This document shows positions 1 through 55,949 of a stretch of 64,000 bases of DNA, in pieces. The notes under the pieces are model-generated. The model had not been told where the DNA came from and did not search any database. It was given only the letters and a program-made list of their open reading frames with translations. The stretch spans positions 138,761-202,760 of the forward strand of contig NIVC01001401.1 of the NCBI GenBank assembly GCA_002269645.1. Direction: 5' to 3'. Made by a program: the position numbers and the translations under genes. The stretch is from Macrostomum lignano. Taxonomy: Eukaryota. Each line of letters begins with the position of its first letter. Position 1 is the first letter of the stretch.

Positions 1-2764
1 CCGCAGGATAGATCCAAGCGACGGAGGTGGGTGCTCGGGGTCTGGAGGGGGAATTCGAGGGGAATTTTTTATTCGGCTTAGATTAGGGCTAGTGGGGAAT
101 TGCTCAGTTTAGATAAGGGCTAGTGGGAAATTGCTCAGCTTAGATAAGGCTAGTGGGGCATTGCTCAGCTTAGATAAGAACTAGTGGGAAATTGCTCAGC
201 TTAGATAAGGGCTAGTGGGGCATTGCTCAGCTTAGATAAGGGCTAGTGGGGCATTGCTCAGCTTAGATAAGAACTAGTGGGAAATTGCTCAGCTTAGATA
301 AGGGCTAGTGGGGAATTGCGCAGCTTAGATAAGGGCTAGTGGGCATTGCTCAGCTTAGATAAGGGCTAGTGGGGCATTGCTCAGCTTAGATAAGGGCTAG
401 TGGGGCATTGCTCAGCTTAGATAAGAACTAGTGGGAAATTGCTCAGCTTAGATAAGGGCTAGTGGGAAATTGCTCAGCTTAGATAAGGGCTAGTGGGGCA
501 TTGCTCAGCTTAGATAAGAACTAGTGGGAAATTGCTCAGCTTAGATAAGGCTAGTGGGGCATTGCTCAGCTTAGATAAGGGCTAGTGGGGCATTGCTCAG
601 CTTAGATAAGAACTAGTGGGAAATTGCTCAGCTTAGATAAGGCTAGTGGGGAATTGCGCAGCTTAGATAAGGCTAGTGGGGCATTGCTCAGCTTAGATAA
701 GGGCTAGTGGGGCATTGCTCAGCTTAGATAAGGGCTAGTGGGGCATTGCTCAGCTTAGATAAGAACTAGTGGGAAATTGCTCAGCTTAGATAAGGGCTAG
801 TGGGGCATTGCTCAGCTTAGATAAGGGCTAGTGGGGCATTGCTCAGCTGTGATAAGAACTAGTGGGAAATTGCTCAGCTTAGATAAGGGCTAGTGGGGAA
901 TTGCGCAGCTAGTAAAAGCCATCAATAGAAATTGCTAAGATTAATAAGGACTCACGTACTCCAGTATATACGCCTTTGTGCTGAAAAATCTTTCTCACCA
1001 TGACAACCGCCCTGTAGCAACGCCAAGCATCAAAGCTGTTTGCCCCAGCGAAGGCTGGACTAACGGCGGCTCCACAGTCATCATTGTGGGAGAGAACTTC
1101 TTCGACGGATTGCAGGTGGTATTTGGCACCATGCTGGTCTGGAGCGAGGTGAGTTCAATTTATTTTCATGTAGCTCTCTCATTTAACAGTATTTTAACGG
1201 GACCTTTCGCACTCCTTTGGCAGATGATTACGTCACATGCCATCCGAGTGCAGACTCCACCGCGTCACATACCAGGCGTAGTGGAAGTGACCCTGTCCTA
1301 CAAGTCCAAGCAGTTTTGCAAGAACGCGCCCGGCGTCTTTGTTTACACTTGTAAGAATTTGCAGTTTGTGCTGCTTTCGTAGTCTCGTAGCTCTACTAAA
1401 AGTAGCTTTGATGGGTTGGCGCTCGTATGTCTTAACATATACATGTAAATTGCTGTGTAGTTAAGTTGTATTGGCCAGGGTTGAAGGCTTCAGTACACAT
1501 TCTCTCCCCCAGCCCTCATGGAGCCGACCATAGACTATGGATTAAAGCGACTATGCCAGCTCATCCGCAGTCTCTCTCCCTGTCCCCATTCTCTCCCCCA
1601 GCCCTCACGGAGCCGACCATAGACTATGGATTCCAGCGACTATGCCAGCTCATACGCAGTCTCTCTCCCTGCCCCCCATTCTCTCCCCCAGCCCTCACGG
1701 AGCCGACCATAGACTATGGATTCCAGCGACTGTGCAAGCTCATACCGAGACACCCGGGCGACCCAGACCGACTGCCGAAAGAGATTATTCTAAAGCGAGC
1801 CGCAGACGTGGCCGAAGCTCTGTACACCATGCCGAGGCAGCACCAGCAGATGCAGCAGGCGCAGCAGCAACAGCAGCAAATTCATCACCAGCAGGCGCCG
1901 CCTCCACCGCCACTCAGTCCGTCAATGCAGGCGGCCAACAACAACAGCTTCCATGTAAGTTCGCAAAAATACCTTGGCTCCGCATTAATATCCGATTTTA
2001 TTGCAATAAAAGTTCACTGTCAAGAATCGACACCATTCCGCAGTCTTACACCAGCCAGCTCGCGTCTCATCTGCTGACTCGGTGGCCGGTCAGTGGTCAT
2101 CCTCGGCTATGGCGGCCGCTGCCGCAGCTGCCGCCGCTGCAGCTTCGACGGACGAGTACAACCGGCCAGTTGGTGGGTCCAGACAGGGTCAGCTGCCTCA
2201 CCATCACCAGCAGCATCAGCAACAGCAGCATCTTCAGCAACAGCAGCAGCAGCAGCAGCATCATCACCATCATGCAGTGCAGCATCCGGGATATGCTGAT
2301 CTTCAGCAGCAGCAGCAGCACCACCACCACCAGACGTTGGCTTCAAACGGCGGATCGGAAGTTGGAAATAACAACGACAACGGCACAGCTGCAGCCGCCG
2401 CCGCAGCCGCCGCAGCCGCCGCAGCAGCCGCCGCAGCCTCCTATCCTACTGCCGCCTCAGGCAGTATGGGAATGCAGATGGGCATGCAGATGGGCATGCA
2501 GATGGGCGTACCAATGGGCATGCCGGCGGTTACTGGGCCCGGTCAGGACTTTCTGCACGGAGCGCGTAAGTTTTAGCCAGCAAAACTCTTTTGTTGCTAC
2601 TTATTGATGATTTGTTAGTAGTGTACATTGTATGTAGCACACCACTTTCTAAACATTTTGCAGGCATGTCCTCTCTGCCCTTCACCTCAGTCAACCCGTT
2701 CGCTCTGAGCAGCTCGGGGCCGACTTACCCTGGCGGCGGCTCCATCGCTTCGCCAGTAAAATGA
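1..2764 (+). CDS. coe: COE (collier/Olf1/EBF) transcription factor, 3' part (IPT/TIG domain, atypical HLH, low-complexity C-terminus); 5' end lies outside the window
   Basis: Exons <1-26, 1018-1148, 1224-1350, 1692-1954, 2094-2565, 2664-2764, all GT-AG and phase-consistent. Translation [85 protein letters not shown]...[44 protein letters not shown] matches the EBF/collier IPT and HLH signatures. Ends [12 protein letters not shown]...SPVK*. Confidence 0.96.
72..912. repeat. 31-bp minisatellite (AAGGGCTAGTGGGGCATTGCTCAGCTTAGAT)n in COE intron
   Basis: About 27 tandem copies with minor variants, read directly. Confidence 0.95.
1497..1745 (+). repeat. Tandem 89/90-bp duplication of COE splice acceptor plus HLH exon start (2 extra copies)
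   Basis: CATTCTCTCCCCCAG|CCCTCA(C/T)GGAGCCGACCATAGACTATGGATT recurs with exon starts at 1513, 1602 and 1692 (spacings 89 and 90 bp). Confidence 0.93.
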
Positions 2765-10972: not shown

Positions 10973-11583
10973 TATATGCACGGCCATCAAGTTTCAACAG
11001 TAAAAATTCTGGCATCAGACTTCTATGCTTGAATTCCTATTTTGATCACTCAGGTTGCGGCGTTTCATTAGCACCGAGAAACAGTTTGCCAAATCTCGTA
11101 TGTTCCGCTTCAAGCGGGGCCTCAGGGAAGAAGCAGACGGCTGCTCCACCCACTCCAACAGCCTCCCCATCGTAACGTGGAACCGCATTCTAAGAAAATC
11201 CCGCTAAATACCGCTGCAAACGCAGAAAGGAAAAGAAAAAGAAAGAAACGAAAGAATTGGCAACATGAGAGAGAAAAAGATAACCGTCAAGCTTTGGCCG
11301 TCAAAATGCTTTCAACTGCAGCTTCCCTCATCAACCGCCCCCGGAGGTGCACCGAAGGCGTGCGTTTAGTTTCGCTTGGTGATTCGAATTACGGATTAAT
11401 GCACAATATCCATGCAATAAAAATGTGGAAATTCTTTTTCTTAGCTTCAAACCCCCAGGCGAAGCAGTGCCGGCGATTTTCCACCTGGGGCCCGTAAATG
11501 GAGGCGATTTTAAGAGAGAAATTATACTACCAACAGGGACCACTGTAAGTCACCTGGACTGGAAGCCAGAAGAGCGAAGTGTC

Positions 11584-12005
11584 CTAACCCTAACTAACCC
11601 TAAACCTAACCCAAAACCTAACCCTAAACCTAACGCTAAACCTAAACCTAAAGCTAAACCTAAACCTAACCCTAAAGCTAAACCTAAACTAAATCTAAAC
11701 CTAACTCTAAACATAACCCTAAACAAAACACTAAACCTAAACCAAAACTTCACCCTAAACCAAAACCTAACCCTAAACCAAAACCTAACCCTAAACCAAA
11801 ACCTAACCCTAAACCAAAACCTAACCCTAAACCAAAACCTAACCCTAAACCAAAACCTAACCCTAAACCAAAACCAAACCCTAAACCTAAACTTAAACCT
11901 TACCCTAAACCTAACCCTAACCCAAAGCCTAAACCAAAACCTAAACCTAAACCTTACCATAAACCTTACCCTAAACATAAACCGAAAACTAAATCTAACC
12001 CAAAC
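11584..12005. repeat. Degenerate telomere-like (CCCTAA/CCTAAA) array with 18-bp higher-order unit
   Basis: CTAACCCTAAACCAAAAC repeats and hexamer variants. Confidence 0.85.
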
Positions 12006-12564
12006 CCACGCGCAATTCAGTTTCTAAAATCAGTTCCCGACTTGATTCCATTTTGTGTCATTTGGCATCTTAAAATCTTTGGCATCTTTAAACTGGAGTT
12101 TGATCTCCAGTCCAAGTGGTTGTCAGGGGGATCCCTGATCTCTAAACTAGCGCACACCCTAACACACCAACTGTCTGACACCGAAGGCTGCCGTTCATCA
12201 TCCGGTCCCAGACTCCCGTCCAGCCTCCACCTTTCCCACCACATCCCTGTTCCCTACTGGCCTGCCCGCAGGGGGCCTCATTAAAGTAGATGGAAAAAAT
12301 GGCGCTGACGAGACTGGAAGAATTTAATTTATTCTGCATGCAATTTTTCATACTTTTATCCTCTAGATCCTGGTCTATCTTAGTCTCATCTATTGAATAA
12401 CCTGTTTTTTGGTTGTTGTCTCTCGCGCAATAGAATTCATAGAGATTGTCTTTGACTGTGCATGTGACTCGGCTGTGCGCTGCAACACTTCCAAGAGGTC
12501 ATCCCGCAGCTCCTGGTCTGATTGGCTGTCAGAAAGACAGAAAGACGCCCTTGTCAAAGAAACA

Positions 12565-15545: not shown

Positions 15546-16010
15546 AGGTCCTGGTCCTGATCCCAATCTCGAACCCAACCCCTGTTCTTGATCCTGATCC
15601 CAACCCTATGGAGAATGCTTTTACAAGAACGCGACAGTGAAGAACTGCAAAGGCAGTCTTCGCGACAATATAAAGTGCCTTCTGTGTTGACTGGGGTAGG
15701 ACTAAGAACACTCTTTCCATCGGACTTGGATATTCGTGTTCGATAGAAAATGAAAGTGCATGGAATTTACAAGTTAGCGAGATTACCAATTGTTCATAGC
15801 TGGGACCAAATCTGCAATGTGCGAAAATGAATTTTCTTAAGTAAACAGGACTTCTTCATCAGCTGCTCGCTCACCTCGATGCCTTCTCTTCTAGATTATT
15901 AATTTTCCGCGCTTTCATTTTCTTCAACCTTTACTGAAAGTAGTGTGTTTGTAATGATAGTTTCCTCCACTGACTTACATCCTTACCCTGCGCGCAGCCC
16001 GCCAGTTACC

Positions 16011-19000
16011 ATGGTAACAAGCGACAGCGCCGCGAAAAACGACGCCGACAACAGTCGAAAGGCGGACGCGGAAGCAAAGCGGCGCGCCCGTGGCGCCGAG
16101 GCCGCCACAGCAATGGCAATGACGTCGGTGACCCTCGCGGAGACGTCGGCGACCCCGGCGGCTAAGCCGCATCGAGACGCCGCTGCTTCCGGTCGTCGGA
16201 GTAGACGGGGCGAGTCCAAGCACCGACGCAAGGATCAGAGACATCAGCAGCAACATCAGCACAGCTTCCTAGCTGCAGCGGTGGCGGCCACCGCCGCGGC
16301 CACAGTCGGGCTGCACTCGCTAGAAACGAAAGCGCCGATCGCGCACGACGATGAAGAAGACGAGGGGGCTGCGGCAGCGGCGGCAGCGGCTACGGGCTCA
16401 GACGCCGCCGCCCTGCTGGTTGCCGCTGCGTCAGGCGGCGGCGGTCCGACGCAAAACGGCGTCTCCGATGGGTGTAGAAGCGGCGTGAATACTCTGGCGA
16501 ATCCGAGTGCAGCTGAAGGTGACAGAACTCACTTTTGCGTACCTATGGGAGGCTCACCATTGTTACTCCATAGACTGGATTCCAGCGACCGTGCCAGCTC
16601 ATCCCCAGTCTCTCTCCCTGTCCCCATTCTCTCCCCCAGCCCTCACGGAGCCGACCATAGACTATGTATTCCAGCGACCGTGCCAGCTCATCCCCAGTCT
16701 CTCTCCCTGCCCCCATTCTCTCCCCCAGCCCTCACGGAGCCGACCATAGACTATGGATTCCAGCGACTATGCCAGCTCATCCCCAGTCTCTCTCCCTGCC
16801 CCCATTCTCTCCCCCAGCCCTCACGGAGCCGACCATAGACTATGGATTCCAGCGACTGTGCCAGCTCATCCCCAGTCTCTCTCCCTGCCCCCATTCTCTC
16901 CCCCAGCCCTCACGGAGCCGACCATAGACTATGGATTCCAGCGACTGTGCCAGCTCATCCCCAGTCTCTCTCCCTGTCCCTATTCTCTCCCCCAGCCCTC
17001 ACGGAGCCGACCATAGACTATGGATTCCAGCGACTATGCCAGCTCATCCCCAGTCTCTCTCCCTGCCCCCATTCTCTCCCCCAGCCCTCACGGAGCCGAC
17101 CATAGACTATGGATTCCAGCGACTATGCCAGCTCATCCCCAGTCTCTCTCCCTGCCCCCATTCTCTCCCCCAGCTCTCACGGAGCCGACCATAGACAATA
17201 GATTTATACATAGAGGTAGCTAAATTCTTAAGCTACTTTAAGTAGTTCAAAAGCAACTTTGAAAATGTGCCGCAACTTTTATTTTAGTTTTAATTGGCTC
17301 TCTGAAGTATATGCGCAGAACAGAACTATCTGCGGGTACAAAAGTGAACACTAGAGTCACCGTGACACTTAGGTTTGATTGGCACAGCTGATCGCTCAAT
17401 GGAGACCCTCAAGTTTTCATCAGCAAATGTCGTCGGTTCGTAGCAATTAAAAAATTTAAACGTTTATTTGGCCGCCAAAGGTGATAAAGAGGAATTAATA
17501 AACAAATATGATAAACTATAAACGAAACTAAACTAACTGCGTTTGGGCATGACGCCAATGGAATAAGCTGATTTTCAACTACGCTATTCCAAACGGATCT
17601 AGAATCTGCTTTAGGGATGGCAGTTTCCACTCCAGATATTCTACTAGTTATAGATCTCCATGGATAGCCTTTGATGATAGGTAATGTTAAATCATGGATA
17701 TATCTTCAGACCCAAGCCTAGCTTAGATGGTCCAGGCTCCGACCACATGCTGGGGTCTGTCCAAGCGCAAACTGGTCAAACCAATCTGCACCGCTGCTGC
17801 CACCCTGCTTGGGCTCACAGCACTGTTTCTGGACGCGGAGAGCAGAAATGCGAAAGTTTTGCCCCCTACTAACAATTTTAACTGCTTTGCCTGTCTTGTC
17901 TGCTTCAGTGCTTCAGTAAAGCAGATTCGCCAAAAGTTGTTAACTTTTGCGGCATCCCATCCGACAGTCCATCCCGGGGTCGCGCTAAGATATTATCCCC
18001 TTAGCTGGGCCAAGAAGACCGAAAAACTAGAATTTGGAGTGGCAACTCTTCTTTCCAGGCCAGTTCTTTGACACTAAATGAAACTGGTATCCCTTTATCC
18101 CAAGGGATCGGGATCGGGATCGGGATCGGGATCGGGATCGGGATCGGGATCGGGATCGGGATCGGGATCGGGATCGGGATCGGGATCGGGATCGGGATCG
18201 GGATCGAGACCGCGATTCGACAGAAGATCTGAGAGAAAAGTTTCTACTCCAAATTCTGGTTCTGGGTGTCCTTGGCTGGGGCCGTCCCTCAAGTAGACCA
18301 CACGGGTTGCCCGCCAATAAACCAGCGATCATGCAGTCCCGCTTCGCTTCATATATTAGCCATCCCCGTTATCCTCTACATGGATGCACTTTTCCTTTGT
18401 CTCTGCACACCGACCGTGCAGAGCCAGTCGGGGCCGCGTTGAAGGGCATCGAGGACGACAACCTGACAGGCGGCCTGCTCACCGAACGCGAGTGCCAGGC
18501 TCTGGTCCTGAGAAATCTGCATTACCGGCCTCGCCCATTCAGCGCCTTCACAACCTACAGCGACGCGATGCAGAGCGAAGACGACATCGAGGAGCTGCGA
18601 GCGACGGCCGGCCAGCGAACGTCCAACTACGACAATTTGCCTGCGTCAGCCGCTGCTGCAGCTGCTGCTGCTGCGGGTTCGCCGCCGGAAAGGCCGGTGC
18701 GAACGAGGCGTCAGGATGCGCAGACGAAGCTGCTGCTGGCGCCACTGGCCGCCGGCGGCGGGGTGACGTCTGCGGCTGCGGCGGAGACTGAAGATGACAG
18801 TGAGAGTCAGATTGACAGGGAGTTGAAGGGAGGGATGAAGGATGTGAAGATAAATCGAGATTCAAGAAGAGATTCGTAAATGGATTCGTGAATGGATTCG
18901 TGAATGGATTCGTGAATGGATTCGTGAATGGATTCATAAATGGATTCGTGAATGGATTCATAAATGGATTCGTGAATGGATTCGTGAATGGATTCGTGAA

Positions 19001-22000
19001 TGGATTCGTGAATGGATTCGTGAATGGATTCATAAATGGATTCGTGAATGGATTCGTAAATGGATTCGTAAATGGATTCGTGAATGGATTCGTAAATGGA
19101 TTCGTGAATGGATTCGTGAATGGATTCGTGAATGGATTCGTGAATGGATTCGTAAATGGATGCGTGAATGGATTCGTGAATGGATTCGTGAATGGATTTG
19201 TGAATGGATTCGTGAATGTATTCGTGAATGGATTCGTGAATGGATTCGTGAATGGATTCGTGAATGGATTCGTGAATGGATTCGTGAATGGATGCGTGAA
19301 GGGATTCGTGAATTGATTCGTGAATGGATTCGTGAATGGATTCGTGAATGGATTCGTGAATTGATTCGTGAATGGATTCGTGAATGGATTCGTGAATGGA
19401 TGCGTGAAGGGATTCGTGAATGGATTCGTGAATGGATTCGTGAATGGATTCGTGAATGGATTCGTGAATGTATTCGTGAATGGATTCGTGAATGGATTCG
19501 TGAATGGATTCGTGAATGGATTCGTGAATGGATGCGTGAAGGGATTCGTGAATTGATTCGTGAATGGATTCGTGAATGGATTCGTGAATGGATTCGGCAA
19601 AAGGTCAAGAAAAAGAGGTGACCCTTCAGTCCAGCTTAAATCCTGCCGCCGCTCGCAGAGGCGGCAGACACCGATGGCAAGAAGGCCGCCGCCGACCAGG
19701 CGACAGACTCGCCCGAGAAGCAGAAAAATCAGCAGCAGCAGCAGCAGCAGCAGAACGACGGCAAGCCGCCCACTCGGCCGAAGGTGTCGAAGTGGAAGCG
19801 ACGAAGGCGTCGCTGCGTCTCCTGCCTGAAGACCTCCGTGGCCTTCCTGTTCTCGCACATCGGCCTGTGCCTGCTGGTGATTGGCTACACCCTGTCAGGG
19901 GCTTACCTGTTCGTCTACCTGGAGCACGATCGGTCGGTCATGGACAATCGGATGTACACGGAGAGCGTGGCTCAGACGAGAATTCATATGAGGTTTGAGA
20001 CTGGGACTGGGAAGGAAGCTGCTGAGAGCTTGCCCTAAGAAAATATTGATAATCTGAGCCACTAGATTATTTAAGAATAGATCTAAAAATTGAGACAAGA
20101 GAGACTGGATCTATAGACTAGAATAGGAAGACTATGCGAGACTAGATCTGGGAAACTCGATATACGAGACTAGATCAGGAAGACTAGATCTAAAGACTAA
20201 GAGCTGAGAGTCTAAATCTGAGAGACTAGATCATTGAGACTAGATCTTAGAGACTAAATAAGGGAGACTAAATCTGTGAGACTTGATAATAAAGACTAAG
20301 TCTACGAGACTTGATATGAAAGACTAGATCTGAGAGACTAAATCTGAGAGACTAGATCTGAGAGACTAGATCTGAGAGACTAGATCTGAGAGACTAGATC
20401 TGAGAGACTAGATCTGAGAGACTAGATCTGAGAGACTAGATCTGAGAGGCTAGATCTGAGAGACTAGATCTGAGAGACTTGATCTGAGAGGCTAGATCTG
20501 AGAGACTAGATCTGAGAGACTAGATTTGAGAGACTAGATCTGAGAGACTAGATCTGAGAGACTAGATCTAAAAGACTAGATCTAAGAGACTAGAACTCAG
20601 ACTCTACACAATCAACCCTGTCTATCGATAGAAGCTTACAAAAATCAAGAACTTCGAAAGTTGAACACGCACTCTATTCAGGCCTTTCATACCATCAGTT
20701 GCAAGATCCCTGCTTCTCAGGAATGTATTCTTTCCTCCTAGCCAGCCATGCGGGGTGAACCTCAGATTAATAATTAACTGAGTAACCCCAGCAGCTGTTG
20801 CGGCAGAGAACGGGGATGGAGTAGAGGTGCCGGAAAAACAAACTAAAATTCGATTCGCACTCAAGCAGATTTTCGGCAAACAAAGGAAGAGAGGAGAGTC
20901 TCAGTGAACATGAATAATTCACTGATGCGGCGCTTAGTATTGCACTTGAGCTCGTAGGATCAGCAGTGGGAGGTCTTGGTAATGCGCGCTCAAGACCTCA
21001 TTGCCAATCCACTGTAATTGCAGTGCACTAACTGAACTCGACCAATTAGAGAAATTCTTGCTTTTAATTGCGGTAGGAAATCATGTTAATGTTTTTCTGG
21101 GCCAAATTTATGGATGTTACTCATCTAGCTTGTTGATTACTCATCTATAGCTTGTAGATCACTCATATATAGCTTGTAGATTACTCATATATAGCTTGTA
21201 GATTACTCATATATAGCTTGTAGATTACTCATATATAGCTTGTAGATTACTCATATATAGCTCGTAGATTACTCATATATAGCTTGTAGATTACTCATAT
21301 ATAGCTTGTATATTACTCATATATAGCTTGTAGATTACTCATATATAGCTTGTATATTACTTATCTAGTCTGTAGATTACTCATCTAGCTACAACTGCCC
21401 AACCCCACAGCGGCAACATGACCCAACCAGTCGTCGAGATGATCCAGGAGCTCAAGTCGGACTTTGAGCAGTTGTTTCACGTTCTAGAAGACATGGCAGA
21501 TGAGTCCTACAAGAAGCTGCTCAACATCAGCCAGATGCTGAGTTCGAGTCGGCTCCGACTGGCCGACGCCGTGCGCGAAGTTGGCGACGCAAATTCGCAG
21601 CTGTTGCACCAGCTTCAGGGGGACTTCACCCAGCATGAGGACAGCATCGAGACGCAGGTGGGGGTCCTCGGCAGCCTCCTGTCCAACATCAGCTGTCCGC
21701 CGTGCCCGTTTGGGCATCCGGGTGGCAACCGGTCTGGCAGCACCGGTCGCAGCATGCAGGACTACACTAACATGGTGCACAGGATCCGACAGCAGCTGGA
21801 TAAGTAAGCGGGTCCGCGACAACTGACTGCCCAAGAATAAACTCTAACCTAAAATCTAAGCTAAACCCTAACCTAAACCCTATAACCTAAACCCAATAAC
21901 CTACACCCTAACCAAAACCCTATATCCTAAACCCTATAACCTAAACCCTAACCTACACCTAACCTAAACCCTATAACCTAAACCCTATAACCTAAACCCT

Positions 22001-25000
22001 AACCTAAACCCTATAACCTAAACTCTAACCTAAACCCTAACCTTAACCATAACTTTAGCCCTAACCCTAACCTAAATCGTAGACAGAAGAGAATAAGCAT
22101 CGTATAAGCAATAAAATCGATTAAAAAATCGATCGAAAAAAAATCTATATTAACAAATCAATATTAAAATATCGATCATGAAAAAACGAGACTGAATGAA
22201 TCAATGAGTAAAAAAACGGATTATTAGGTCAATAGTCCATTTATTATTAATAGAAAATTACTATATATATATAAGTAACAGACAACTGAAAATCCGAAAA
22301 TGCTTCATCTTCAGCAATCAAATTTTCTATAAAAAATTCAGATCTCAGCTCGGCATCCGCAAGGAGCTTCGGCAGGCTGTCAACTCGGCGAAGGCTCGCA
22401 TCCGAGAGGAGGTGTTCCAGCTGTTCAATCATTCAACCGCCTACCGGCGCCAGGTGCTGCAGGTGCAGGCCTCTTTAGAATTGATGCAGGCCAGCCTCTA
22501 CAATTTCACCAGCGTTGCCCACCTCGAGTTGGAGAACAATCGAGTTCTGCTAGAGAAAATCAAAGGCGGTAAAGATTATTCCACTGTTGGCACCAATACT
22601 ATGATGGCCAGGTACAATTATTCGGCCACTTTGCGTACCTGGGCGCTGAAACTGGAGGAGTCTGTTTACAGCTACGCCATGCGGGGCTGGAGTCGGCCGG
22701 ACGAGGACAAGCCGGGTGTCAATCAGACTATCTGGACTTTTCCTGGCGCTCTGCTGTACGCCATCACCATAGTGACTACCATTGGTGAGCGGCGCTTGTG
22801 ACTATTGCTGATGTACTGATTTTCTACTTGTATCCATACATGCTTCTGACTCTGTGATCTCATCTCTCCACACTCCTGACTCTGTGATCTAGTCTCTCCA
22901 CACTCCTGACTCTGCGATCTAGTCTCTCCACACTCCTGACTCTGTGATCTAGTCTCTCCACTCTTCTGACTCTGTGATCTAGTCTCTCTACTCATATCGC
23001 TCTGCGATCTAGTCTCTCCACTCTCCTGGCCCCGAGATCTAGTCTCTCCACTCTTCTGGCTCCGTGATCTAATCTCTCAACTATTCTGACTCCGTGATCT
23101 AGTCTCTCCACTCTTCTGGCTCCGTGATCTAATCTCTCAACTATTCTGACTCCGTGATTCTAGTCTCTCCACTCTCCTGGCCCCGAGATTTAGTCTCTCC
23201 TCTTCAGATTTTCCCTCTCTCTTTTAGTCTTGCTTTGCGAATTGGCGGTGGGAAGTTTATAATAAGAGCGCATAGTGTACTTTTGCTGTGAGACTACATG
23301 TATGTCATTCATCCTGGGAGTTCTGGCTGTCCCCCCTCCGAAGTTGTGCATCCAATTCGCAGGACGTCTAGCTTGGCTAATCGGTTTTCTGTGTTAATCA
23401 GAGCGATCATTAAATTTTTATGCGTTGCCAGGGCACTGATGTCTCAACTGATCTTTCTAGCATATCTATGCATCTGTGAGTTTATGTATCCATGCAATCC
23501 ATGCATCTATACTTCTAGGTATATGCATCTATCTAGGGGTGAGCGTCGGACTCACGACTGAAAGGTCGGGGGTTCGATTCTCGAGCCACCTCGGAACAAT
23601 TTGTGTCCTTGAGCAAGACATTAGCTGGGGTAATTGAGGGTGTGTGTGGCGACCCCCCCTCCCCAGTCCTTAGACTGAACAGGCGTACGCAGCCTTCAGA
23701 TGTGCTGCGCATCTAGACATCTATATCAATCTATATATCCATGCATCTATAAATCTATGCATCTATATTATTACCTAGGAAGTGTCACCACGAGCTGAAA
23801 TACGTGTAGAATACGAGCCCATACCGTATATCATGACCATGGACACGGCAGAGTGGACTTCAATTACAATCTGCAATAATTGCCTGCAAGCAATTGGGGA
23901 AATCCCATTTTTGAATTCGCATCGGTTAACCAGCTGAGTAAGCCCCAAAAAAATTGGTCCCAGTGTAATCTGTATGCTTTCAATTAAAGATTTCTGAAGC
24001 GAAACTGCAGATGATTATGCACAGACTTAGCCAAGCAAATGGTATCGATCAGTGCAGTTACCTCGCTCAGTTGCCTACAGTGCCAGCCAGCCAGATTGGT
24101 CAGCCATGCCTTCACACTGATGACCTCTTCGGGAGGCGGATCACCGTTCTTTTATGATCATTTTTCTCTTTTTCTGTGTCTGTCTCTTCCATATCTCCTC
24201 TGGTTTGAAAGTCTTCCCAATTGCGAGATTAAACTGTCGAGGGCTATTGAACCTAAAAATCATAAAAATGCATGGCACAACTCGACTCCTTGGTTTCATG
24301 AATCCATTTTATCATCTCTGTTACAAATACTGTCACATAGTCAGCTAAGAATGACAAAATAGATTCATAAAACCAATGAGCCGAGCCATGCAATTTTAAT
24401 GAATTTCAGGCACAGGACATGTACAAATGTACGTAGAATAAAACATTAAGCTTTATGAATATCAATAGAGCTATAACAAAGGCACAACATATCAAAAGAT
24501 GAACATTGGGTCTGCCTCCTGCTGAAAAAAGATTTTCTTGGAAAAATTTTTTCCAAGAAACGAGATTTCCCGTCCTTGTACTTGAGTAGTCCTTGCTGAG
24601 AATTTTATTTCTAAGAAATTCACTACAATGCCCCCCTCCGTTTTTCTACTATTGGATTTTGGACTGCTGTTATCGTTTAGTCCTGGCCTCAGTCGTAGAT
24701 TTTCAAGCTAAATTGGCCAATTCCAAGAAAACAGGTCCGACAGTCGAGACGGATTCGATCTTAATTAAGAGGAAAGCCAACATTCTGGCTAGCTGTGCAA
24801 CTATCGGTAAAACCCAAGTTGCGCGGGGCCGCATCCCAGCGGGATTGGGGGGGGGGGGGGCATGGACAAACCAGAGCTGTGCGTTCTGCAGTTTGCCGTT
24901 GTCCTTCAAATCTCGTCCCGATGCAAAACCAGCATGCAGTACCTGTGTTCTGCGCTAGTTTTGGCCTCTCATGGTTCGCTCACGGTCAGAGAGAGAAGGG

Positions 25001-26750
25001 GCCACGAATTTCAAACTGTTTCTAAGAAAAGGAAACAGGTCGAGTTGGTTATTAAAAGATTCAAGGGCACTGAGGGAGCGGAGAGGCAGATTCAAGGGCA
25101 CTGAGGGAAGGGAGAGGAAGATTCAAGGACACTGAGGGAAGGGAGAGGCAGATTCAAGGGCACTGAGAGAGCGGAGAGGCAGATTCAAGGGCACTGAGGG
25201 AGCGGAGAGGCAGATTCAAGGACACTGAGGGAGCGGAGAGGCAGATTCAAGGACACTGAGGGAAGGGAGAGGCAGATTCAAGGGCACTGAGGGAGCGGAG
25301 AGGCAGATTCAAGGACACTGAGGGAAGGGAGAGGCAGATTCAAGAACACTGAGGGAGCGGAGAGGCAGATTCAAGGACACTGAGGGAAGGGAGAGGCAGA
25401 TTCAAGGACACTGAGGGAAGGGAGAGGCAGATTCAAGGGCACTGAGGGAGCGGAGAGGCAGATTCAAGGACACTGAGGGAAGGGAGAGGCAGATTCAAGA
25501 ACACTGAGGGAGCGGAGAGGCAGATTCAAGGACACTGAGGGAAGGGAGAGGCAGATTCAAGGACACTGAGGGAGCGGAGAGGCAGATTCAAGGACACTGA
25601 GGGAGCGGAGAGGCAGATTCAAGGACACTGAGGGAGCGGAGAGGCAGATTCAAGGACACTGAGGGAGCGGAGAGGCAGATTCAAGGACACTGAAGAAACA
25701 GAATGGCAGATTTCTTACTATTTACGGACTACTTACGGACGCATTCAAACACAAAGGGCTATTGCTACTACAAGTAGTGCAAATTTTAATTAATTGTATA
25801 AAATTGGTCCCAAACTGGCTGCCATCGCAGGCTACGGCCACGTGGCGCCCAAAACGGTTGCCGGCCGGCTGTGCACCATCTTCTACGCCATGGTGGGCAT
25901 CCCGCTGATGCTGCTATGCCTGCACAACCTCGGCTCCTTCCTGGCTGACGTGTTTCGCCTCTGCTACCAGCACTGCTGCCTCCGTCTGTGGCGCAGACGA
26001 CGGATGCGCCGGCTGGCCCGCCATCACGAGGCCATCAGCAGTCGCAGTCGGCGGGGCCGGGTGCGCGCCTTTGACCAGCTGTCGGAGATCATGCCCATCT
26101 CCAGCCGCTACCGGTCCCGACGGAGCAACCGTAGCGGCGCTACAGTCCGGCGCGGCGGCGGCGGCGGCAGCGGACGGAGCGGTCTGTCGACGGCTACGAC
26201 GGCCGGCGGGCGACACGGGGCGGCGGAGGCGACGCTGGGCGGCAACGGTGGATCGCCGCCAGCGATGATGTCGCGTCGACGAATCTTCCAGCTGGCCGAC
26301 CCGAGCACCGGGCAGACGCTGGACCTGTGCGTGCTACCGCCGGCGTCGGTGGGAACCGCCGGGCGGGCCGCCAGCTCCTACGCCGCCTCGACGCCAGTCA
26401 GCAGCGTCGAGGATCTCGGCGAAGTAATCCGCGTGCCGGTCTGGCTGACCCTGACGGTGTTCTGCATCTACATCCTGACCGGGGCGGTGCTGTTCTACTC
26501 CTGGGAGCAGTGGGGCTTCATGGACTCCGTCTATTTCGTGTTCATCACCCTGACAACCATCGGGCTGGGTGACTTCGTGCCCGGCATGCAAGAGTCGTCC
26601 TGGACTGACGAGGCCAAGCCAATCACCTGCGGCCTGTACCTGCTGTTCGGCCTGGCCATGATCGCCATGTGCTTCCAGCTGATGCAGGAGGAGGCCAAGG
26701 ACAAGGTGAAATCGTTCGGCAGAAAGATCGGACTGCTGGACGATGGCTGA
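16011..26750 (+). CDS. Two-pore-domain potassium channel (K2P, invertebrate TWK/TWIK-like), about 991 aa, with greatly enlarged M1-P1 extracellular loop
   Basis: Exons 16011-16518, 18422-18799, 19659-19992, 21411-21803, 22342-22784, 25831-26750 (2976 nt, phases 1,1,2,2,1 all consistent, GT-AG). M1 [24 protein letters not shown]; P1 [17 protein letters not shown]|GYGHVAPKT; M2 [19 protein letters not shown]; M3 [21 protein letters not shown]; P2 [25 protein letters not shown]; M4 [18 protein letters not shown]. Exons 1-2 are assigned by phase and composition only, so they are less certain. Confidence 0.93.
16569..17197 (+). repeat. About 7 copies of an 89-bp unit derived from the COE acceptor/HLH exon, inside K2P intron 1
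   Basis: Unit CCAGCGACTATGCCAGCTCATCCCCAGTCTCTCTCCCTGCCCCCATTCTCTCCCCCAGCCCTCACGGAGCCGACCATAGACTATGGATT is nearly identical to 1497-1745; it translates [18 protein letters not shown]. Confidence 0.95.
18104..18205. repeat. (GGGATC)17 microsatellite
   Basis: Perfect hexamer repeat. Confidence 0.97.
18870..19594. repeat. 12-bp minisatellite (GTGAATGGATTC)n filling K2P intron 2
   Basis: About 60 copies; source of several spurious ORFs. Confidence 0.96.
20323..20590. repeat. 14-bp minisatellite (TAGATCTGAGAGAC)n, with degenerate copies back to about 20100
   Basis: Tandem copies read directly. Confidence 0.92.
21113..21390. repeat. 22-bp minisatellite (TTACTCATATATAGCTTGTAGA)n
   Basis: About 12 copies. 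Confidence 0.92.
21843..22075. repeat. Degenerate telomere-like (AACCCT/AACCTA) array in K2P intron 4
   Basis: CCCTAACCTAAACCCTATAA-type repeats. Confidence 0.82.
22843..23200. repeat. 30-bp minisatellite (CTGACTCTGTGATCTAGTCTCTCCACACTC)n
   Basis: About 12 diverging copies immediately after the exon 5 donor. Confidence 0.9.
23532..23690 (+). mobile_element. tRNA-derived SINE fragment
   Basis: tRNA-like head with B-box GGTTCGATTC (23571-23580), followed by TGTGTCCTTGAGCAAGACA, which resembles the conserved central motif of CORE/V/Meta-type SINEs. Confidence 0.65.
25057..25693. repeat. 31-bp minisatellite (GGCAGATTCAAGGACACTGAGGGAGCGGAGA)n
   Basis: About 20 copies. Confidence 0.95.

Positions 26751-50949: not shown

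Positions 50950-55949
<5,000 letters not shown>

Follow-up and report, generated by a model that had tools for sequence, protein, structure and literature searches.

Partial duplication of the dimerisation motif is known in the COE (Collier/Olf/EBF) family from the HLHLH arrangement of vertebrate EBF, in which the duplicate of helix 2 is constitutively coded, ancient and fixed. Closely spaced competing acceptors are known from NAGNAG and wider tandem acceptors, which lie 3-12 nt apart and yield in-frame insertions or frameshifted isoforms. Intragenic minisatellites (VNTRs) are built of head-to-tail units of tens of bases, the outermost of which are degenerate; they have relatives at further loci, and make up repetitive coding or purely intronic tracts. 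Additionally, tandem duplication of a segment that bears a splice site can leave a protein unchanged, the redundant copy being spliced out (Hellsten et al., 2011, PMC3265369), and in the Rogers model and the potato RdRp cases it is an exonic AGGT that is duplicated, giving rise to a new intron (PMC3265369, PMC4974935). Presented here is a coe gene of the flatworm Macrostomum lignano in which the repeated unit takes in a splice acceptor along with the first part of the helix-loop-helix (HLH) exon.

The window analysed is a stretch of 64,000 nt (contig NIVC01001401.1, positions 138,761 to 202,760), and its first gene, on the forward strand, is by sequence comparison the 3′ half of a M. lignano-type coe gene. 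Pfam detected an IPT/TIG domain (53.9 bits) followed by the COE-specific HLH (COE1_HLH, 103.6 bits, positions 1-44 of 44), the succession that characterizes COE proteins, and PDB matches were obtained to 3MLP (E-value = 3.9e-83) and 3N50 (E-value = 2.1e-81). The window starts downstream of the region for the N-terminal zinc-knuckle DNA-binding domain (PF16422), and the preceding exon is present by its last 8 residues only (1-26, ...RRIDPSDG, phase 1, donor GT at 27-28), which match residues 92-99 of P0047, a M. lignano COE fragment. Exon A (1018-1148), located by tblastn to COE proteins and by Pfam, encodes the first half of the IPT/TIG domain and exon B (1224-1350) the second half, ending in phase 1 with a single T. 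The canonical HLH exon (1692-1954), supported by Pfam and PDB matches, encodes helix 1, the loop, a single helix 2 and a Gln/Pro-rich tail, and keeps all conserved HLH residues. It is followed by exon D (2044-2565), a low-complexity C-terminal region delimited by homolog comparison, and by exon E (2664-2764), the last coding one, where 29 of 29 residues match P0047 and the stop TGA occupies 2762-2764. The single helix 2 of the flatworm protein matches twice in 3MLP and 3N50, in line with the preliminary description of this DNA, according to which helix 2 is doubled in vertebrate EBFs and single here. Arrays also occur in introns of the coe gene itself, such as a 31-bp minisatellite of 27 copies upstream of exon A (76-910, TRF score 1334).

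At the acceptor of the HLH exon, Tandem Repeats Finder (TRF) reported a repeat of period 89 at 1498-1745 (2.8 copies, 94% matches, score 440), and a 31-mer taken from the unit was counted 9 times across the window, where 100 shuffles predict 0. The repeat thus fits the definition of a minisatellite, two or more units of 10-100 nt arranged head to tail well in excess of what chance would give. Each 89/90-nt unit joins 14 nt from the end of the intron to ~57-68 nt from the start of the COE HLH exon, and further contains a pyrimidine-rich junction of 17-22 nt. The native, non-repeated part of the intron, as read from the sequence, extends from 1351 to 1498. Copy 1 (1499-1587, 89 nt) carries an AG at 1511-1512 and would open an exon at 1513; copy 2 (1588-1677, 90 nt) carries an AG at 1600-1601, would open an exon at 1602 and ends in a C6 run (1672-1677); copy 3 (1678-1745) carries the canonical AG at 1690-1691 and the true start of the HLH exon at 1692. 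The likeness of copy 3 to the other two stops near 1745-1749. Copies 1 and 2 differ by five substitutions and one indel. Copy 1 is the most diverged (T>M, FQ>LK), just as the preliminary description had stated, and has lost the invariant F and Q of helix 1. Copy 2 keeps every invariant residue of helix 1, K>Q being its sole change.

The three acceptors share the donor of exon B (GT 1351-1352) and would lead to three distinct translations. An exon from 1692 gives the canonical COE HLH, [28 protein letters not shown]. An exon from 1602, 90 nt upstream, gives an in-frame extra 30 aa, [30 protein letters not shown], which produces a second partial COE1_HLH match in Pfam. An exon from 1513, a further 89 nt upstream, shifts the frame (ORF 1518-1622) and ends at the TAG at 1620-1622; its product covers HLH positions 1-17 of 44 only, below the Pfam cut-off. 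These results uphold the earlier account of three exon starts, of their frames, of the TAG stop, of a repeated helix-1 stretch in the +30 product and of a truncated product that loses most of the HLH. Concerning the 30 added residues, their count and frame were right and their register was off by one. The codon split at each acceptor consists of T from exon B and CC from the new exon, so the first residue after the junction is Ser; it would be Ala only if the acceptor were read through.

The signals for splicing differ among the three sites. All of them have an AG, a pyrimidine tract and a plausible branch point, and those at 1602 and 1692 are stronger than those at 1513, the pyrimidine tract being longer there. 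Specifically, pyrimidine content at -22 to -4 is 0.89 at 1602 and 1692 and 0.74 at 1513, with 0.47-0.74 in the other introns of the gene. A yUnAy branch-point candidate (CTCAT) is found 38-39 nt upstream of 1602 and 1692 only, followed by an AG-free stretch, and the 1351-1498 intron part offers only weak candidates and has a further AG lying 17 nt ahead of the first acceptor (1513). The acceptors are identical from -14 to +7, the differences lying further upstream and, in copy 1, at exon base +8. Taken together, these features would favour 1602 and 1692 over 1513.

A second locus with the same unit, overlooked in the preliminary description, is present ~15 kb downstream. Array S (16568-17204, forward strand; 7.2 copies, TRF score 1176, 97% matches) lies outside the coe gene and repeats the acceptor, the helix-1 coding fragment and the pyrimidine-rich junction. 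Its translation matches COE1_HLH positions 1-19, from which we conclude that it derives from COE. The coe repeat is a genuine three-copy 89/90-nt minisatellite and belongs to a small local repeat family with array S as the other member. Among 30 arrays tested, only the 89-nt unit had a second locus within the window. Arrays of three and seven copies occur in one window, and the copy number of this minisatellite is probably variable. Minisatellites make up 39.8% of the window, in 41 array intervals; for the M. lignano genome, simple and tandem repeats have been reported at 15% (PMC5730564). A transposon carrying variable arrays was also considered and rejected, as an array-masked self-comparison of the window found no shared repeats between the inter-array sequences. 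Rooting of the COE copies against array S by their junction hexamers (canonical exon ACCGAG, copy 2 ACGCAG, copy 1 CCGCAG, array S CCCCAG) gave no consistent order within these few informative sites, every tree requiring a reversal or recombination. Dating of the duplication against the 2.2% paralog divergence was not significant, with 4-5 events counted over 89 nt and a Poisson p of roughly 0.05-0.14.

The nearby related array raises the concern that the assembly gives a wrong COE copy number or wrong homopolymer lengths, through misplaced array S reads or long-read indels. Mis-represented paralogs have been stressed as a problem of M. lignano assemblies (PMC10733133), and a 1-nt deletion in a GG pair of exon D, described below, could be a sequencing error. 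Nevertheless, five substitutions separate copy 1 from copy 2, and the two differ from the S consensus at diagnostic unit positions (G 69, A 67, AA 46-47, T 21), so they are not S reads or stutter copies. Additionally, no frameshift interrupts a 957-nt potassium-channel ORF (25794-26750) or four other exons of COE. We give an artefact of this kind only a slim chance.

The reading that we hold to be somewhat more probable than its negation is that decoy or alternative acceptors arise from a minisatellite seeded on the intron-exon boundary of what may be a decaying homeolog. In the simplest view, the duplication would have come about incidentally, through the tandem-repeat formation seen throughout the region, and not as a selected domain duplication. 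Production of normal COE would require the distal acceptor at 1692, in which case the two upstream copies would amount to 179 extra intronic bases; 1602 may act as a competing site yielding the +30-aa in-frame product, and 1513 as a minor site whose product ends prematurely. The decay of copy 1 at invariant residues is what is expected of intron sequence. Against this reading stand the rules by which the nearest or first-transcribed 3′ splice site is chosen: they favour upstream sites, and under them frameshifted or +30 transcripts would be abundant. The only M. lignano COE model in the protein database, P0047, likewise counts against it, the HLH exon being left out of that model.

The preliminary description had gone further and proposed that a helix of the HLH had been duplicated independently, which could affect dimerisation. 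Under that explanation 1602 would be substantially used, the extra copy would alter dimerisation or the IPT-HLH geometry, and the extra C would be kept for the sake of the frame. The signals at 1602 are indeed as strong as those at 1692, and the site is transcribed first. Copy 2, stop-free and in frame as assembled, is the only one of nine full units to measure 90 nt, the other eight (copy 1 and the seven units of array S) measuring 89 nt, and its in-frame spacing is due to one extra C in the C6 run. However, the seven S units come from one founder, so the comparison is effectively one of two lineages against one, and no kind of mutation or assembly error is commoner than a one-base change in a C run. 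Nor does the retention of the invariant residues by copy 2 speak for selection, as array S keeps the same helix-1 residues despite its location outside the gene. In the product Pfam recognises two HLH stretches, and a single-sequence model of the +30 isoform shows both H1 copies as helical with a disordered linker between them, although this model is monomeric and, at a mean pLDDT of 51.7, supports secondary structure only.

Comparison with other proteins also speaks against a functional duplication. A collection of 5.8 billion proteins, among matches listed at ~0.57 to 1.75 times the length of the query, yielded no COE protein of M. lignano that spans the HLH junction; the one fragment, P0047, does not include the HLH exon. 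Among 33 aligned homologs, no insertion is present at this junction except in the models P0015, P0019 and P0038, whose inserts are short, do not resemble helix 1 and look like intron read-through. In the best 150 of 392 representatives, a duplication of helix 1 only is absent, and the one protein with two helix-1 matches has the whole HLH module duplicated. Judged from these comparisons and from array S, the helix duplication appears neither to recur in related proteins nor to be under purifying selection. The proposal of an independent duplication therefore lacks support on several counts. Its unit is a minisatellite with a seven-copy array outside the gene, in a window that is 40% minisatellite; the 1602 frame hangs on one homopolymer base; the protein collection searched gave no transcript or annotated protein with 1602; and the gene copy bears other signs of relaxed constraint or sequence error. 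We regard a functional helix-1 duplication as quite unlikely. The narrower proposition, that 1602 is used and that selection holds the 90-nt copy in frame to give an isoform with the order H1, Pro-rich linker, H1, loop and H2, we hold to be a shade more doubtful still; if true, it would represent a minisatellite-born invertebrate counterpart to the duplicated helix 2 of vertebrates, and dimerisation or IPT-HLH spacing would be altered.

The other signs just mentioned concern exons B and D. Codon 1335-1337 is GTC (Val), at a position that is Arg in the other M. lignano model and in each of the 33 aligned homologs. The frame of exon D changes between two conserved motifs, SYTSQLA (2044-2064) and [10 protein letters not shown] (from 2067), so that one base is apparently missing near 2064/2065, in the GG pair; an alternative acceptor 11 nt downstream (exon from 2055) would restore the frame. 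The frameshift near 2065 and the R>V change could be bypassed, tolerated or sequencing errors. They could also mark a decaying homeolog in a neopolyploid, under relaxed constraint, in which 1513 would capture much of the splicing, with a premature stop as the result, and the tandem acceptors would be one of several disabling lesions. Three oddities then coincide in one gene copy (an out-of-frame first acceptor, the exon D frameshift and Val at an invariant Arg), and redundancy is provided by a genome most of which is reported to be present in three paralogous copies ~2% apart (PMC10733133). Furthermore, the P0047 model skips both the HLH exon and the following one, which is compatible with annotators or transcripts finding no open frame here. 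On the other hand, exons A, B, C (the HLH exon) and E are otherwise intact and highly conserved, the frameshift is avoidable through the exon from 2055 or is perhaps an assembly indel, and the local signals at 1513 are the weakest of the three. Decay to this extent, with 1513 as a major site, is in our judgment unlikely, though it deserves some weight.

Returning to the favoured reading, of a minisatellite that generates decoy or alternative acceptors, its implications depend on which sites are used. If the upstream acceptors are used, the locus would be a natural experiment in 3′ splice-site choice with distinguishable outputs (normal, +30 aa and premature stop), in a conserved neuronal transcription factor of an animal in which transgenesis is possible, and it would exemplify how a protein domain can be varied at one stroke by a minisatellite. 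With the distal site as the sole one in use, it would be a clean case of intron lengthening by tandem duplication with the gene unaffected. Either way, it advises caution for gene annotation in a repeat-rich polyploid genome.

Compared with the known systems, the locus shares with the HLHLH of vertebrate EBF/COE a partial internal duplication of the dimerisation motif, but the flatworm duplicate consists of helix 1 together with its splice acceptor, and is young, minisatellite-like and also amplified outside the gene. As in NAGNAG and wider tandem acceptors, close competing acceptors could lead to in-frame insertion or frameshifted isoforms, yet the spacing is 89/90 nt and duplication of the entire 3′ splice region has given every site a pyrimidine tract and a candidate branch point of its own. 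Like VNTRs, the array has head-to-tail units, a degenerate edge copy and a related array at another locus, whereas its unit spans the intron-exon boundary of a deeply conserved domain. Finally, in common with the Rogers model, the Hellsten cases and potato RdRp (PMC3265369, PMC4974935), a splice signal has been duplicated and the redundant copy is removable by splicing; here, instead of an exonic AGGT that creates a new intron, it is the 3′ end of an existing intron that is duplicated, which would result in a longer intron with decoy acceptors.

Within its first 2.8 kb the window carries, on the + strand, the 3' half of a gene for a COE (Collier/Olf/EBF) protein. The exons of this gene, all on the + strand, were located by visual inspection and by tblastn comparison with COE proteins: the end of the preceding exon (exon -1, 1-26), exons A (1018-1148) and B (1224-1350) of the IPT/TIG domain, the helix-loop-helix (HLH) exon (1692-1954), a low-complexity exon, here exon D (2044-2565), and the last coding exon (2664-2764). 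The spliced product contains the Pfam TIG domain (53.9 bits) and a complete COE1_HLH domain (103.6 bits, positions 1-44/44), and matches the solved structures 3MLP (E = 3.9e-83) and 3N50 (E = 2.1e-81). The sole near-identical database protein among the matches found is P0047, a Macrostomum lignano entry (UniRef A0A1I8IWB3), with 122/123 residues matching over exons -1, A and B together with the last coding exon. Its model leaves out the HLH exon and the one after it, with exon B running straight into the last exon (1350 to 2664) in a compatible phase; this junction would yield a COE without the dimerisation motif and may reflect either a genuine isoform or a work-around in annotation. No M. 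lignano COE with the HLH exon was found in the protein collection (queries of 169, 346 and 455 residues), and exact look-up gave no contigs carrying the window ORFs or P0047. In P0123, a related flatworm COE, the last 25 IPT residues (GVVEV…FVYT) are absent and HIP is joined directly to AMTEPTIDY (compare 1276-1350 in the window), which implies a putative internal donor, in phase 1, in the equivalent of exon B.

At the boundary of the HLH exon, Tandem Repeats Finder reported 2.8 copies of an 89-nt unit (1498-1745, 94% matching, score 440). The unit consists of the final 14 nt of the intron (ATTCTCTCCCCCAG), the initial 57-68 nt of the HLH exon and a pyrimidine-rich junction (TCTCTCTCCCTGCCCCC[C]). 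The acceptor AGs end at 1512, 1601 and 1691, and the three tandem acceptors of the preliminary description, opening exons at 1513, 1602 and 1692, are present in the sequence. Translation from the shared donor at 1350 (phase 1, T before the junction) agrees with the frames proposed there: acceptor 1692 leads to the canonical COE HLH sequence, 1602 adds 30 residues in frame, and the out-of-frame reading from 1513 ends at TAG 1620-1622. Comparison of the units (copies 1, 2 and 3 at 1499-1587, 1588-1677 and 1678-1745) also confirmed copy 1 as the most diverged (T>M, FQ>LK), with 5 substitutions and one indel relative to copy 2.

The same 89-nt unit recurs outside the COE gene. Array S (16568-17204) holds 7.2 copies of it (TRF score 1176, 97% matching), each with the acceptor, the helix-1 coding fragment and the pyrimidine-rich junction, and of the 30 arrays tested no other had a unit that occurs at a further locus within the window. 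Its flanks showed no similarity to the COE gene. Translated, array S matches the first 19 positions of COE1_HLH (Pfam), and since these residues are conserved across animals the unit must originate from the COE gene. The array comes straight after an ORF (15945-16838) that is rich in GC and in Ala/Gln and has no Pfam domain apart from this match; the tandem copies of S offer seven strong sequences that resemble 3' splice sites. M. lignano is a species with spliced-leader trans-splicing, and these sequences could, as candidates, act as trans-splicing acceptors.

At a Lys codon, C replaces A (K>Q) in every S unit as well as in copies 1 and 2, so that all of them descend from a single diverged copy. 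At the junction, the hexamer of the exon is ACCGAG, against ACGCAG in copy 2, CCGCAG in copy 1 and CCCCAG in S; every tree needs reversal or recombination, so that S may have been founded from the COE array or COE copies 1-2 may have been converted from S. The 5' part of copy 2 is like copy 3 and its 3' part like copy 1, a mixture that unequal exchange from an older two-copy state would explain. Diagnostic positions set copies 1 and 2 apart from the S consensus, and they are therefore not misplaced S reads, while their five substitution differences from one another make it unlikely that the copy number is an assembly artefact. The frames are another matter, as they depend on homopolymer lengths as assembled. 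The 90-nt length of copy 2 comes from a C-run of six (1672-1677), against five or equivalent in the other units, so that the in-frame status of 1602 hangs on one base. The extra C can be read three ways: as chance, as an assembly error, or as a frame-restoring change kept by selection. A length of 90 nt is found in COE copy 2 only, against 89 nt in COE copy 1 and 7/7 S units, a comparison of little weight since the S units come from one founder and it amounts effectively to two lineages versus one.

The surroundings are rich in such arrays. Altogether, 41 minisatellite intervals make up 39.8% of the window, a tandem-repeat share (~40%) far above the 15% of simple and tandem repeats reported genome-wide for M. 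lignano (PMC5730564). Units are mostly 4-54 nt, with two longer ones of 89 and 95 nt, and differ from array to array; the spacing between arrays ranges from a few hundred bases to several kb, and the separating sequences, when compared, had no repeats in common. The intron just upstream itself bears 27 copies of a 31-mer (76-910). Most simply, the COE triplet can be read as a small minisatellite that by chance was seeded on an intron-exon boundary, rather than as a selected duplication of a domain. Telomere-like arrays of degenerate CCTAAA/CCCTAA variants were also detected inside this minisatellite-rich stretch, at 11583-12007 and 21838-22072. The large chromosome of M. lignano arose by fusion, and these arrays may be interstitial telomeric sequence. 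Neighbouring genes, namely a two-pore-type potassium channel ORF (25794-26750; Ion_trans_2, 98 bits) and DM (doublesex/mab-3) DNA-binding-domain ORFs at 53186-53629 and 54441-55079 (55 and 24 bits), fit an ordinary animal chromosome region.

Acceptor choice was predicted from sequence signals. Between -14 and +7 all three sites share one sequence, and the differences lie upstream: at -22 to -4 pyrimidines make up 89% in 1602 and 1692, which also have a yUnAy branch-point candidate (CTCAT) at -38/-39 and an AG-free stretch of 29-30 nt, while 1513 has 74% pyrimidines, weak branch-point candidates only and an AG 17 nt upstream. With pyrimidine scores of 0.47-0.74 in the other four COE introns, 1602 and 1692 are the best predicted acceptors in the gene on local signals. 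Proximity and transcription order favour upstream 3' splice sites, which counts against a preference for the two distal ones. The canonical copy keeps all conserved HLH residues, whereas the invariant Phe and Gln are gone from copy 1, as expected if copy 1 is intron and copy 3 exon. Copy 2 retains both residues, and as array S does too, their retention is uninformative on selection.

At the protein level, Pfam recognised two HLH stretches in the product of acceptor 1602, and in that of 1513 only HLH positions 1-17/44, below the cut-off. AlphaFold was run on the contiguous piece 1604-1843 as a single sequence. The model, whose low mean pLDDT (51.7) makes it informative on helices and not on packing or dimers, tentatively has the two helix-1 copies as helices at residues 8-20 and 37-46 and helix 2 at 59-75, and gives low confidence to the Pro-rich linker. 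Duplication of helix 1 only was found in 0/33 aligned homologs and in none of the best 150 of 392 helix-1-matching representatives (from 1.84 billion proteins). Among these best 150, the sole protein with two helix-1 matches is P0358 (323 aa), whose membrane-like N-terminus is not of COE type and which has two complete COE-type HLH modules in tandem. The +30 isoform would be unique if expressed, and we regard expression of the in-frame duplication via 1602 as improbable. Of the independent helix duplication first proposed, the anatomy and the frames hold; the inference that it could change dimerisation is unsupported, and is weakened by the extragenic sister array S and by the state of the gene copy.

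Regarding this state, the SYTSQLA motif (2044-2064) and the next conserved motif (from 2067) of exon D lie in different reading frames. The two are contiguous in homologs, as FNSYTSQLAVSV…QW, and therefore one base is missing near 2064/2065, where the window has GCGTC for the expected GCG-GTC. Use of the AG 11 nt further downstream, opening the exon at 2055, would bring the frame back but lose the first motif. Additionally, codon 1335-1337 (GTC) encodes Val in the IPT/TIG motif PG-R-FVY, at a position that is Arg in 33/33 aligned homologs and in P0047. Most of the M. lignano genome is reported in three paralogous copies ~2% apart (PMC10733133), which makes a decaying homeolog, with this coe copy under relaxed constraint, a serious rival. 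The apparent frameshift, the Val at an invariant Arg and the P0047 model lacking the HLH exon and the next one all speak for it, although the 1-nt deletion in exon D (2044-2070) may be a genuine lesion or an indel of the assembly, and the latter would explain the frame break equally well.

Compared with known systems, the helix-2 duplication of vertebrate EBFs concerns the same family as the flatworm COE, but a different helix, and is ancient and constitutive in vertebrates. Near concepts are tandem alternative acceptors for the sites at 1513, 1602 and 1692, intragenic minisatellites for the COE array, and the creation or extension of introns when segments bearing a splice site are duplicated in tandem (Hellsten et al., 2011, PMC3265369). 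The COE acceptor triplet is a fresh instance of known phenomena and not a new category.
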